Part shown: positions 34,434 to 38,977 of the stretch, piece by piece | Numbering within the stretch: the stretch's first letter is position 1 | How the letters are laid out: each line of letters begins with the position of its first letter | DNA from: Geosiphon pyriformis uo1 | Lineage: Eukaryota > Fungi > Glomeromycota | Assembly: GCA_016748015.1 (NCBI GenBank) | Contig: JAAOMT010000226.1 | Location: 1,098,604 to 1,162,603 of the forward strand | Length of the DNA stretch: 64,000 nucleotides | Reading direction: 5' to 3' | Translations under genes and position numbers: made by a program | The notes under the pieces: generated by a model | Told to the model about the DNA's origin: nothing | What the model saw: only the letters and a program-made list of their open reading frames with translations | Database searches by the model: none

Positions 34434-37400
34434 ATGTCCGAAAATACCAGAATAGCTTCCTCTGTTGAAAATGAACCAACTAAAAAGTGTCCGCCGAACT
34501 TTCCATGCAATACTTCCGATAACGTAAAAGTTATCAAAGAGCGAATCATCAAAACCAACCAGTTAATGAAGCTTTTCGAAGCCAAAAATCAAGGTAATAG
34601 GTTAAGAACAATGTTAAATCTCTTTTGCCCTTCAAACTTAAATGGTCACTTATTTCTACTCGCTTAATAAGAGCTCATTAAGAGTAAAGAAAATTTTTTG
34701 GATCTTCAGGAGCACTTTTCCCAAACTCAAACTGCCAAGGATGCAGGCATGTTTTTTATTTCCAAAAATCCAAACTTTTCATTAATCATTTGCTTACATG
34801 GATTCTATCATTAGAACTGACACAGAGCAAGCAAGAAATCGCTTCCTTACAAACTTTTTTAGCAAAACTCCAAGAAGAAATAAGGATTCCCTCAAAAGAA
34901 AACGAGGTTTTGCGATTAGCTGCACAACAGCAACACGCGGAAGTAATGAAATTGAAGGAACAACTGAAACAACAAGATGCTCAACTAAAAGATCAACAGT
35001 ATTCTTCAACACAACTGGAAAAACTTCGTAATGAAAATGAAAGATTAGGGCAAAGAATAAAATCTTTAGAGGTGGGATTTTTTTATTGACTTTAATCTAT
35101 GGACAAATATCATATCGTTTCTTTGACACTCCATTCCTATTATTTTCAAAGATTTTAAAGGGTCAGCTGGAATTCAAAGTTCAAGAAGGCGAACAAATTA
35201 TAACCACTCATGAACAGCAAAAAAAAGAAATAATCAAGATAAAAAAGGAGTTGCAGAAGAGGTAGGCAATCAAACATAAAATTTCTTTTCAGACTCAGAT
35301 GCATTGGAATTAGGGGATATTTGTTTATGAAGCTCTTTCGCATGTCTAGCACTATCCTATCATCAATCTTAATTACTTCTTGTGGGATCTTTCTTATTGC
35401 TGCTGATTATTAGCATTTCTCACCACGGGCCCATGTATTCCAAATCCACTATGCCATTACAGATGTCCCTAGCATTGCACCTCTGCTAGGAGACGCTAGA
35501 ATGCATGATAAAGTGTTATTTTTGAAAGCTTTGTTTGACTTCAAACGGTGTTTTTTTAACCCATGAGAATTTCTAATTATTTAATCAATTAATCGCTATA
35601 TAGAGATGAACAGGCCAGAAAAAATCAATTTGAAAAGACAAAACTCACCGAACAATTAAAAAAACTGCAGACAGAAAAATGCAAAATCGAAGAGAAAGTC
35701 ATGATCATGGAAGAGAATTCCGAAACGCTTCAAGACAAAGAACTAGAGCGAGAACTAGAAATTAGTATATTGAAGAATTCTCTTTCCGAACGAGACAAGC
35801 AGATCACTCAATTACATCGACAGATAGAGGATTTAATTTCTAAAGCCAAAGAATGTGAAGAAATAGATAAAGATCTGGATAGGCGAAAACATGATTCCGA
35901 AATGATTCTTTTGAAAAAGGAAATTGAACAATACCAAAAAAAGTTACAAATTGTTGAATCAGAATCCCTGAAAGCTCGGGAAGAACTTACCAAGTTAAAA
36001 AATGAGGCCATTGGAATAAGTGTTTTGGAACACAACAATAGCAAGCTTCAAGGACAATTACAAACTGCACATGAAGCATTTGAAATCCAACAAAAGGAAG
36101 TAGTTAGGCTTAAAACTGAGATTGATAAGATGAATGAAATGAGGCAACAAAATATTGAACTCTTGAGAAAATCAAAAGCTGCTAATGACCAAATTGCTAG
36201 ATTGGGGGACTCTTTACAGGAAAAATCAAACACCAGTGCGCTCACCCAAAATAGCATTCAACAGCCTTTTTTAGCATTAATCCAACAACTGAATACTTGG
36301 AAAAAAAATACAGAAAATTTGGAAAAAATCAAAGTATGTGATATTTGATTTGAGTCTTAAATGATAAGTCTAACGATGAAATATTTATGCAGAGTGCCTT
36401 ACAAGATTTAGTAACAACGCAGCAAGTAGAAATTATGGAATTGCGGAAGCATCAAAGGGAGACGGATCCTAAATTGGTACTTCTTTTGCCAAATTCATAG
36501 TAAACTGCTTAGCGAAAACATTTATTTATTTGCTAAAAGAGGCATTCAATAATGGTCATCTTCGATTCAGAACGTCGATGTGTTCTACAGTCAATCTCTC
36601 GAAACCAACCAAGAAACTATACAATTTCCTTTAACCCCCATAGATATTTCTCCAAAATCTATAACTATTCCTGCTATTAACGAGGAAGAAATTAATGAAT
36701 GGGAATCGAACAGTACCCAACCTAAACTATCGGCAAACTATTCCTTAGACGTTGGCATAGATCATTCATCAGATTCTTCTACAAATTTTGGAAATACTTC
36801 ATATGCTATTCATACACCGATCGATTGTCGCGAGGACTCATTGAGCTCAAAATCTGAACTTTTTCCCCCTGATGCTCTTCGATCTACATTAGATGAGATA
36901 AATTTTCTTAACCCTCTTAATTCTCCAACAAATATCACAATTCCAAGCAAAATCGATGAAACATCAGAAAAAAATAGGACAAGCTCTGAAAAATCTATGC
37001 CTTCAAAAACGCCAATTGTTATGGCTTCGAGACCCGATCATCCATTACCTGTTGTCACCTCTCCATATCAGGATCAAAGCAAGAAAAGACGAAAAAATGA
37101 AAATGCTACTAAAACGAGCAAGAGTATAAACGATCAAAATTATGGAAGTAAACGGAGGAGATTATCCAGCAAAATGCCAGCGCCAATATCCCAAGAATCG
37201 TCATCCACTGTTGCACTTGATGACTTGATGTGTATGTATCGGTTATGCCTAGTATTTTTAATCGATTTTTGTGAATTCTGATTTGTTATTCATACTAGTT
37301 ATAAGTAAGAAGTTGGATGATCTCGCGGTGCAATCCCAAGCTATATTCAAGTCCATAAATTCCCTAAGAAATTTTGCCTTTGAAAACGCTGCCGTTCTTT

Positions 37401-38977
37401 TGAAAGCAGTTGATCAGCATATTCGTGGAATGCGTACCCCCATATTTTTGCAAGTATATTTGAACGGGGAGCAATTTAAAAAATTCTCGCGAGCGACGGG
37501 CTCAAGTATAAAGTTGCCATCAATCATTCCAAAAAAAGAAACTGATGTAATTTTATTTCTTTGGTACCTTTATATGGAGTTTCCGGAGGTAGGAGGACAA
37601 AATTTGCTCATTCATTGGTATATCTTAGCCATTATTAAGATACTTGTATTTCTTTCTAGAGTGATTTTTTGGAAATTTTCTTGCAGAATGCTAGCGAGCA
37701 AATTGTTTTGTCAAAAAACAAATCTGCAGAATTGGGATTTTCAAGGTTTAGGTTCTTTAAGTCACGACATTTCCGCTACCATGTAAAACTTCTCAAAAAT
37801 CTTACTTTTTTAATATAGCCGTTTATGTCGAATTTTTATAGCTATTTGTCGCCTCTCAAATAATTTACAACGGGCCCGTGTATTATGTTATGATCTTTTA
37901 AGGGAAATCAAAAAACCGGATTATATATTTAAGGTGCTGGAGAACATTGCGAAAGTATGGCCTCAAGTTCTCCGATACTCGATCCTCCTACAAACCAAAA
38001 TGAATGAAGGTTGGTATTCTTCAATACTGAAGCTACTTGACGCTGTTTGCTTGAACACGACATGCTACCATAAATAAAATCTATATATCAATTGCCTCGA
38101 AATTTAAGGCGGTTTATGTCCCTTGCGTATTATTGTGGCTATCGTTGCCATCATTGCCGTCAAAATTCTCGAGAGTTCAAAAGAGATTCAGGTACGGTTT
38201 TCTATCGCTATAATGCTACAAGTTAAAAAATTTTTCTTCACAAATAATTTCATCCAGGTCAAAGAGATGTATAATACATTTGTACAGAATTGCCTTTGGG
38301 AAAAACTTGATGATGCTCCGTCAATATCTGATACTCTTCGAGACTTGATAGTTATTCTGCAGTCACCGAGTTTCCAGCAAAGATATAACAAAGAGGCGCT
38401 TCAAGGTGTGATTCTTTAAAAAGATAACGCCTCTTCGTCTGATAAACAAGTGATATTTAACTCATTTTGACAATCATAGGTGATTTTCAAGAGTATCGCT
38501 TCAACCTGCTTAAATCTTATGAATTAGCTGCCGTTTGGTGTTCTTGGGATGACATATTTGAAAGTCTGGTATGCCAAACATTATGGCCTATGATCAAGGA
38601 TGAGAAAGCAGGTGATATTCCTCTGGAGATAATTGGTACCATCTGCCGTAAAGGATTGTTTGAAGTGAAAAGGAAGAAGCAAATTGAACAACTTGTTTCT
38701 CGGCTTTCTGCGTCTATCGCTCCTCAGAGCAACGGTAGGTAAATGATTATTCCTCTGTTTAGAAATGCTCTAAAGAACTCAGCATTATCTATATCTGCCT
38801 GTAGCTTCTTTTACCCTTCAAAAGCGTGCCGCTGACGTTATACTTCTTCTCGCCAATGGTGATTTAAATCAACTTGATCTTGTATTTCGCTGGTATTCAT
38901 CAATTGATTCCGAGAAACGAGGACTTTTATCAGATTCCTTTGAGATGCAACTTCAAACTTTACAGTCCTTTAATTAG
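34434..38977 (+). CDS. Coiled-coil protein with ICE1-like (little elongation complex subunit 1) C-terminal domain, ~14 exons
   Basis: The spliced reading frame is consistent through to TAG at 38975-38977. Long N-terminal coiled coil, S/P-rich middle with KKRRK, C-terminal RLCRIFIAICRLSNNLQRARVLCYDLLRE...W, LAAVWCSWDDIFESLVCQTLWPMI, LEIIGTICRKGL. The gene is solid; the ICE1 assignment is from remembered sequence. Confidence 0.8.
35464..35495 (+). promoter_or_regulatory. Intronic RNA hairpin with AUUGCAC loop (U1 snRNA stem-loop II / U1A-site mimic)
   Basis: tgtc-CCTAGC-attgcacctct-GCTAGG-a-gacg within intron 35262-35603. Confidence 0.6.

Follow-up and report, generated by a model that had tools for sequence, protein, structure and literature searches.

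U2 snRNA stem-loop IV-like hairpins in a poison-exon cassette of an ICE1-like gene of Glomeromycotina: a candidate feedback on snRNA supply

The matching of snRNA output to the supply of snRNP proteins is largely an open question. The closest described system is P5SM of plants, in which binding of L5 to a 5S mimic causes the suicide exon of TFIIIA to be skipped (PMC3378873). In P5SM, the host gene encodes the factor that transcribes the mimicked RNA, the partner protein of that RNA acts as the sensor, and the mimic of the product RNA is found in a conserved cassette exon carrying a premature stop (PMC3378873). A second related system is the U1A polyadenylation inhibition element (PIE, Rfam RF00460), in which AUUGCAC sites in an mRNA, often two of them, are read by free U1A-family protein. 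The PIE has an internal-loop form. Among the snRNA hairpins bound by this family, stem-loop (SL) IV of U2 is closed by U-U and carries U8 in a loop of 11 nt, SL II of U1 is closed by C-G and has a loop of 10 nt, and a change of the closing pair from U-U to C-G raised the affinity of the ancestral single protein and of the U1A branch (PMC4114683). ICE1 acts in snRNA transcription (PMC6321306), and one survey reports it as missing from yeasts and Basidiomycota and regards it as lost early in fungi (PMC6351623).

We analysed a 64,000-nt stretch of the Geosiphon pyriformis genome (the window), which contains an ICE1-like gene. An earlier note, made from the letters of the window, had described a 342-nt intron in this gene and, within it, a hairpin at 35468-35490 extended across one bulge. 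The interval has GT-AG ends and does measure 342 nt, the other introns with joints in RNA contigs measuring 59-99 nt, and the hairpin was found as described. The features of the locus are as follows.

34434-38977, plus strand: ICE1-like gene G9A89_012657 of Geosiphon pyriformis, encoding P0001 (KAG9301274.1, 1100 aa)
35152-35261, plus strand: upstream constitutive exon, ending in phase 2, with a strong donor
35262-35603, plus strand: alternatively spliced interval, whose full removal (35261^35604) restores the reading frame, as in the annotated protein P0001
35350-35512, plus strand: poison cassette exon, long form, 163 nt, seen in a contig of run X2
35414-35603, plus strand: second poison form, with the acceptor at 35414 and part of the downstream intron retained, seen in contigs of run X3
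35424-35460, plus strand: upstream hairpin (hairpin A), from alignments and folds; its loop starts AUUCCAA and is degenerate in Geosiphon
35464-35495, plus strand: U2 stem-loop IV-like hairpin (hairpin B), a putative U1A/U2B''-family consensus site
35513-35518, plus strand: weak donor site at the end of the poison exon, used in run X2
35604-36333, plus strand: downstream constitutive exon, encoding coiled coil, present in RNA contigs

The core of hairpin B (35468-35490) has a 6-bp stem with a C-G closing pair and a loop that starts with AUUGCAC at 35474, and the stem is lengthened by 4 bp (35464-35467 with 35492-35495) past a single bulged residue, A35491. The full stem therefore reads as 4 bp, a 3' bulge and 5 bp, followed by the C-G closing pair and an 11-nt AUUGCAC loop. 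This agrees with the published description of a binding site as AUUGCA(C/G) in the 5' part of a loop that has 10-11 nt and a closing pair of C-G or U-U (PMC4114683). The segment 35462-35497 folded with -13.8 kcal/mol (z -3.2), and the interval as a whole folded no better than its shuffles (z 0.76), indicating that structure is confined to the local hairpin. The heptamer AUUGCAC alone occurs in the window at chance level (9 seen, 8.95 expected). When placed in a loop closed by at least six Watson-Crick pairs it was seen once per 64 kb against an expectation of 0.04, and the hairpin is present as a single copy within the window.

We next turn to splicing of the interval, for which contigs from two sequencing runs were available, run X2 from the same sample as the genome and run X3 from another sample and study. 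Although both are labelled as probably DNA, their contigs lack the GT-AG introns throughout the gene and were read as RNA; the exon joints of the ICE1-like gene are present in them. A spliced contig of run X2 carries the joints 35261^35350 and 35512^35604, and thereby includes the 163-nt cassette exon, which holds the hairpins, shifts the frame and introduces a stop at 35411-35413. In run X3, 35261 is joined to 35414 and the RNA then continues unspliced through 35603; its reading frame ends at a stop codon (35487-35489) that lies within the 3' arm of hairpin B. Reading frames were checked by joining short stretches around the alternative region. Since the acceptors at 35350 and 35414 and the donor after 35512 are used, 35262-35603 is an intron-exon-intron unit rather than a plain intron.

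Alternative and unproductive splicing around the hairpin, which the earlier note had suspected, is thus present in the RNA contigs, both as the cassette of run X2 and as the retention of run X3. Its proposed poison acceptor fared less well: an AG ending at 35462 exists, with a stop two codons on, but the corresponding junction, 35261^35463, was not seen in the RNA contigs, and the acceptors at 35350 and 35414 were used instead. The in-frame joint 35261^35604 was also not among the joints in the contigs of runs X2 and X3. Contigs drop variants, and they therefore establish that the poison forms exist and are not vanishingly rare, but carry no isoform ratio. In Gigaspora, an RNA contig (L008) begins 73 nt inside the orthologous intron and so retains its 3' part, with nine later introns spliced.

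The donor of the poison exon is located 17 nt 3' of hairpin B. It is weak: scored with a matrix built from 87 constitutive introns, it ranks below at least five other GT sites in the interval. Candidate donors predicted in five other species (Gigasporaceae, Acaulospora and Diversispora) align with the column of the 35512 donor; the splice sites of the poison exon were observed in RNA of Geosiphon only. In seven species (L003, L007 and others) the 3' arm of hairpin B contains CUAG followed by GUG, which scores as an acceptor as well as a donor. Splice sites may lie inside the stem of hairpin B in these species. The GU of CUAG-GUG is absent from the Geosiphon arm.

Combining the acceptor of run X3 with the donor of run X2 (35414-35512) would give a 99-nt in-frame exon whose only stop falls within the 3' arm of hairpin B; this form was not seen in the RNA contigs. 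Read-through or editing of that stop was considered and rejected, given the absence of this form from the contigs and of any listed letter change at the site. We also set aside a functional hydrophobic tail encoded by the long poison exon, a region that fails to align in other species.

Orthologues were compared in eight species, namely Geosiphon, two Ambispora, Dentiscutata, Gigaspora, two Acaulospora and Diversispora, which represent two orders, with Glomerales and Paraglomerales outside the set. The orthologous phase-2 intron measured 254-378 nt in 8/8 (the other 87 introns had a median length of 76 nt) and contained one or two exact AUUGCAC hairpin sites in 8/8 Glomeromycotina and in 0/3 outgroup fungi. 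In these outgroups (Calcarisporiella, Umbelopsis and Spizellomyces) only short introns were found, none with the hairpin. AUUGCAC occurred 14 times in 2573 nt of orthologous introns and once in 6787 nt of other introns. The usual form of the element is a tandem pair of hairpins. In the five Diversisporales the AUUGCAC site of hairpin A is intact, in a loop of 10-11 nt whose closing pair is U-A. Every species, including Geosiphon and Diversispora epigaea, retains at least one site.

Some variation on this arrangement was seen. In D. epigaea (L006 2295-2368) the stem of hairpin B is kept and its motif lost while hairpin A is intact, which is the reverse of Geosiphon. Both Ambispora loci (L001 2980-3131; L002 3006-3150) have an extra upstream copy of the U2 SL IV type. 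In A. leptoticha there are three hairpins, one of which has a stem of 8 bp and AUUCCAC in its loop and is deleted in A. gerdemannii.

Between species the hairpins can be aligned, but hardly any of the intron sequence around them. In the hairpin alignment the inner five pairs are unbroken in all 8 distinct rows, and 84% of cells pair. Three pairs are changed on both sides, one outer pair goes from U-A to A-U in Acaulospora, and the closing pair occurs as U-U, U-A, U-G and C-G. The earlier note had looked to the orthologues for an invariant loop with covariation in the stem; AUUGCAC hairpins are indeed present in 8/8 with the inner stem always paired, but single hairpins have lost the motif and covariation is modest. 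In an alignment that includes U2, 25/500 shuffles reach the covariation score, which taken alone is weak evidence. Local scores of the Geosiphon intron against single distant introns were close to the shuffle maximum; what speaks for conservation is the recurrence of the motif at one and the same position, not pairwise similarity.

The pattern of the conserved hairpin was also used to scan metagenomes and returned three matches. One, L010 (WNGF01299103.1, 1392-1584, minus strand), is a complete U2 snRNA gene (165.6 bits); it lies beside a kinase gene that looks like the expanded kinases of Glomeromycotina. The other two, L011 and L012, seem to be fortuitous matches to prokaryotic sequence. The SL IV 38-mer of this U2 matched 29/38 positions at 35461, with the next best site in the window at 23, and 27/28 positions of the Gigasporaceae hairpin, including outer-stem letters outside the search pattern; the likeness is partly selected, as the gene was picked by an intron-derived pattern, and this U2 may not be that of Geosiphon. 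In the opposite direction, a covariance model built from introns only recovered the L010 U2 (37 bits, E 7e-6) as its sole significant match outside the training set. The rest of U2 (5' end, branch-point region, Sm site and SL III) had no match in the intron. Unlike in the snRNAs, SL IV- and SL II-type structures occur here as isolated hairpins in a pre-mRNA. To judge from this comparison of sequences, the main hairpin appears to have been copied from, or to have converged on, stem-loop IV of U2 snRNA.

The near-identity of the stem to U2 SL IV would also be expected of a neutral U2 pseudogene fragment, or the interval could encode a snoRNA or Sm-class RNA, with cryptic sites giving noisy splicing. 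An Sm-like U run at about 35518-35524 and weak Rfam C/D matches could be read in the same way. However, SL IV alone has been kept, in one to three copies and in two fungal orders, while its flanks diverged; neither the Sm-like run nor the C/D boxes are conserved; and there is no match at the Rfam gathering score and a single copy in the window. We regard such an origin as very improbable.

Known RNA classes were examined in the window and at seven orthologous loci, where no Rfam family matched the intron at its gathering score. Matches to C/D snoRNA, U6 and PIE models in the intron were weak and at chance level, a tRNA scan was empty, and the pattern of hairpin A had no match in viral contigs. 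These scans, together with the lack of conserved boxes, speak against the caveat of the earlier note that the segment might belong to a known ncRNA such as a snoRNA. An intronic snoRNA of the C/D or H/ACA class was rejected on these grounds, and an Sm-class RNA composed of the hairpin, the U run and a 3' hairpin because this arrangement is not conserved. Membership of a U2 gene or pseudogene was dismissed, as homology does not extend beyond SL IV, and so was membership of the P5SM family, for which there was no Rfam match and a host other than TFIIIA. Assignment to the U1A PIE family was likewise rejected, given the score below the gathering threshold and the internal rather than 3' UTR position.

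The tandem sites could nevertheless work like the vertebrate PIE, blocking cleavage or polyadenylation within the AU-rich intron, so that a high level of free protein would give full-length ICE1 mRNA. The paired sites of Gigasporaceae and Acaulospora, spaced by about 34 nt, would suit this arrangement, as would the weak match to U1A_PIE (RF00460; 15.9 bits against a gathering score of 50) and the inhibition of poly(A) sites by free U1A (PMC6321306). On the other hand, Geosiphon and D. epigaea have a single intact site, the stem copies U2 SL IV and not the internal-loop form of the PIE, and all contigs cross the region or splice it out, though contigs cannot show 3' ends. We consider such a mode of action quite unlikely. 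The context also differs: the PIE represses U1A's own mRNA from its 3' UTR, whereas the sites described here are hairpin loops in the poison exon of another gene.

In loop size, C7, U8 and closing pairs, the hairpins fit the determinants of SL II and SL IV (PMC4114683). Most orthologous B hairpins are of the SL IV type: they share its stem sequence and 3' bulge, the U-U pair that closes the stem, the loop length of 11 nt, and U8. In Geosiphon the stem is that of SL IV and the closing pair is C-G, as in SL II, and among the Ambispora copies one has a loop of the textbook SL II kind. Given the near-copy of SL IV and the U-U closing pair and U8 in most orthologues, U2B''/U2A', or a single ancestral U1A/U2B'' protein, would be at least as likely a ligand as U1A.

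We then considered the identity of the host protein. Searches from the window were carried out exon by exon, and full-length searches with the NCBI record P0001. The exon-level search returned P0001 and relatives from other Glomeromycotina, Calcarisporiella, Umbelopsis, Dispira and chytrids. Around the exon used for this search, a motif resembles animal ICE1, which was taken as a lead only. The protein has an N-terminal coiled coil, a low-complexity middle and a C-terminal helical-repeat domain, a layout that matches that of animal ICE1 (KIAA0947, little elongation complex subunit 1), with its coiled coil, low-complexity middle and helical C-terminal domain. The structure model of P0001 is an all-helical repeat (pLDDT 82), which fits the putative MIF4G domain of human ICE1 (PMC5896957). 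Pfam ICE1_C (PF25817) matched at consistent C-terminal positions in 8/14 fungal fragments, which are related sequences and not independent tests; scores were 12-20 bits, below the cut-off of 27, with a best E of 0.00049. The ICE1-like assignment of the earlier note is supported by these matching positions and weakened by the sub-threshold scores. In size, the fungal proteins (about 850-1130 aa) are well short of the 2266 aa given for human ICE1 in the survey (PMC6351623).

Fold searches of the PDB and the Atlas with the host protein gave generic helical repeats only, and sequence searches of the PDB gave no match. In both Atlas searches the ICE1_C cluster (0.87-0.88) had the most shared features, with INTS2 ranked higher. 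Instead of an snRNA transcription factor, the host could be some other coiled-coil/helical-repeat protein, the hairpin being a real U1A/U2B''-family site that serves another purpose. The sub-threshold ICE1_C scores, the INTS2 match at the top of the Atlas list, the lack of a specific fold match and the survey without ICE1 in yeasts or Basidiomycota (PMC6351623) would agree with this. Yet the accessible text of that survey did not show absence from early-diverging fungi, orthologue after orthologue matches ICE1_C where it is expected, in the C-terminal part, and the architecture is like that of animal ICE1. We judge such a host to be improbable. On present sequence evidence the protein is likely homologous to ICE1 and, given that homology, would probably have kept a role in snRNA transcription.

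A Logan fragment, P0012 (L015 340-639), matched the fungal family with an hhalign probability of 98.7. It may come from an invertebrate or a protist and could provide a link to animal ICE1, although an attempt to join the fungal family to animal ICE1 through it was unsuccessful.

Geosiphon shows three hallmarks of an RNA-mimic suicide exon, with an RNA mimic in the exon, alternative inclusion with a premature stop, and conservation in the lineage. We lean, by a small measure, towards reading the interval as a suicide (poison) exon cassette with U1A/U2B''-site mimics that feeds an ICE1/snRNA feedback loop. The host would be a fungal ICE1, the scaffold of a little elongation complex for U1/U2-class snRNA genes. 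When snRNA is plentiful, U2B''/U1A-type protein, with U2A', would be tied up in snRNPs and the mimic would be empty; the exon would then be included, or part of the intron retained, and the message truncated or decayed. When snRNA is scarce, free protein of this type would bind the mimic, which lies 17 nt from a weak donor and has CUAG splice-site-like sequences of its own, and binding would block exon definition and favour the in-frame skip. More full-length ICE1 would raise snRNA output and close a negative feedback loop. That binding of free protein would cause skipping, and hence the direction of the switch, follows from homeostatic logic and from the analogy with P5SM. The chances seem to us evenly balanced that stem-loop mimics in an ICE1 poison exon report free U2B''/U2A' and U1A and so set snRNA supply.

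The mimic could instead act as an enhancer of inclusion or retention, or the gene could be tied to nonsense-mediated decay (NMD) in an NMD feedback loop. Such schemes draw on the C-terminal domain of human ICE1, which links the exon junction complex to NMD (PMC5896957), and on the unproductive forms being those assembled in all three RNA data sets. They are unlikely, in our view, because free protein that cut ICE1 would deepen an snRNA shortage, and a pure NMD loop needs no mimic of U2 SL IV.

The proposed feedback loop resembles P5SM in placing a mimic of the product RNA in a premature-stop cassette exon of similar length (163 nt in Geosiphon and 175 nt in P5SM). The two differ in their parts: 5S and TFIIIA in plants, and in the fungus U2/U1 hairpins, U2B''/U1A as the presumed ligand and an ICE1-like Pol II factor, with no sequence relation. 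Regulation is proven for P5SM, whereas we infer it for Geosiphon. We found no comparable mimic exon described for animal ICE1, and no published description of an ICE1 circuit with snRNA mimics in the literature searched, from which subscription papers were largely absent. If the proposal is right, this would be a second, independently evolved case, after plant 5S/TFIIIA, of a product-RNA mimic controlling its transcription factor, and the little elongation complex, with ICE1-type snRNA machinery, would be at work in early-diverging fungi. The element, which combines a hairpin of 32 nt with a weak donor and a poison exon, would be a small candidate sensor for the matching of snRNA to snRNP protein. 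Mimics of snRNA stem-loops are worth seeking in introns of SNAPc, Integrator, ELL and ICE1 genes of other eukaryotes.

In Geosiphon, CLP1 is arranged head to head with the ICE1-like gene, a neighbourhood that was not seen beside the orthologue in the other species fetched. The segment 34363-34447 is absent from an RNA contig and has CT..AC ends, which mark it as an intron of the minus strand; it probably belongs to the 5' UTR of CLP1, which is transcribed divergently. Since it covers the start codon of the ICE1-like gene at 34434, the CLP1 and ICE1-like transcripts overlap head to head. The second intron of the ICE1-like gene (34747-34814) is seemingly GC-AG, in agreement with a loose end in run X2 and with the annotated protein. 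Run X3 differed from the window at three letters (37475, 37913 and 38554), which are probably strain differences.
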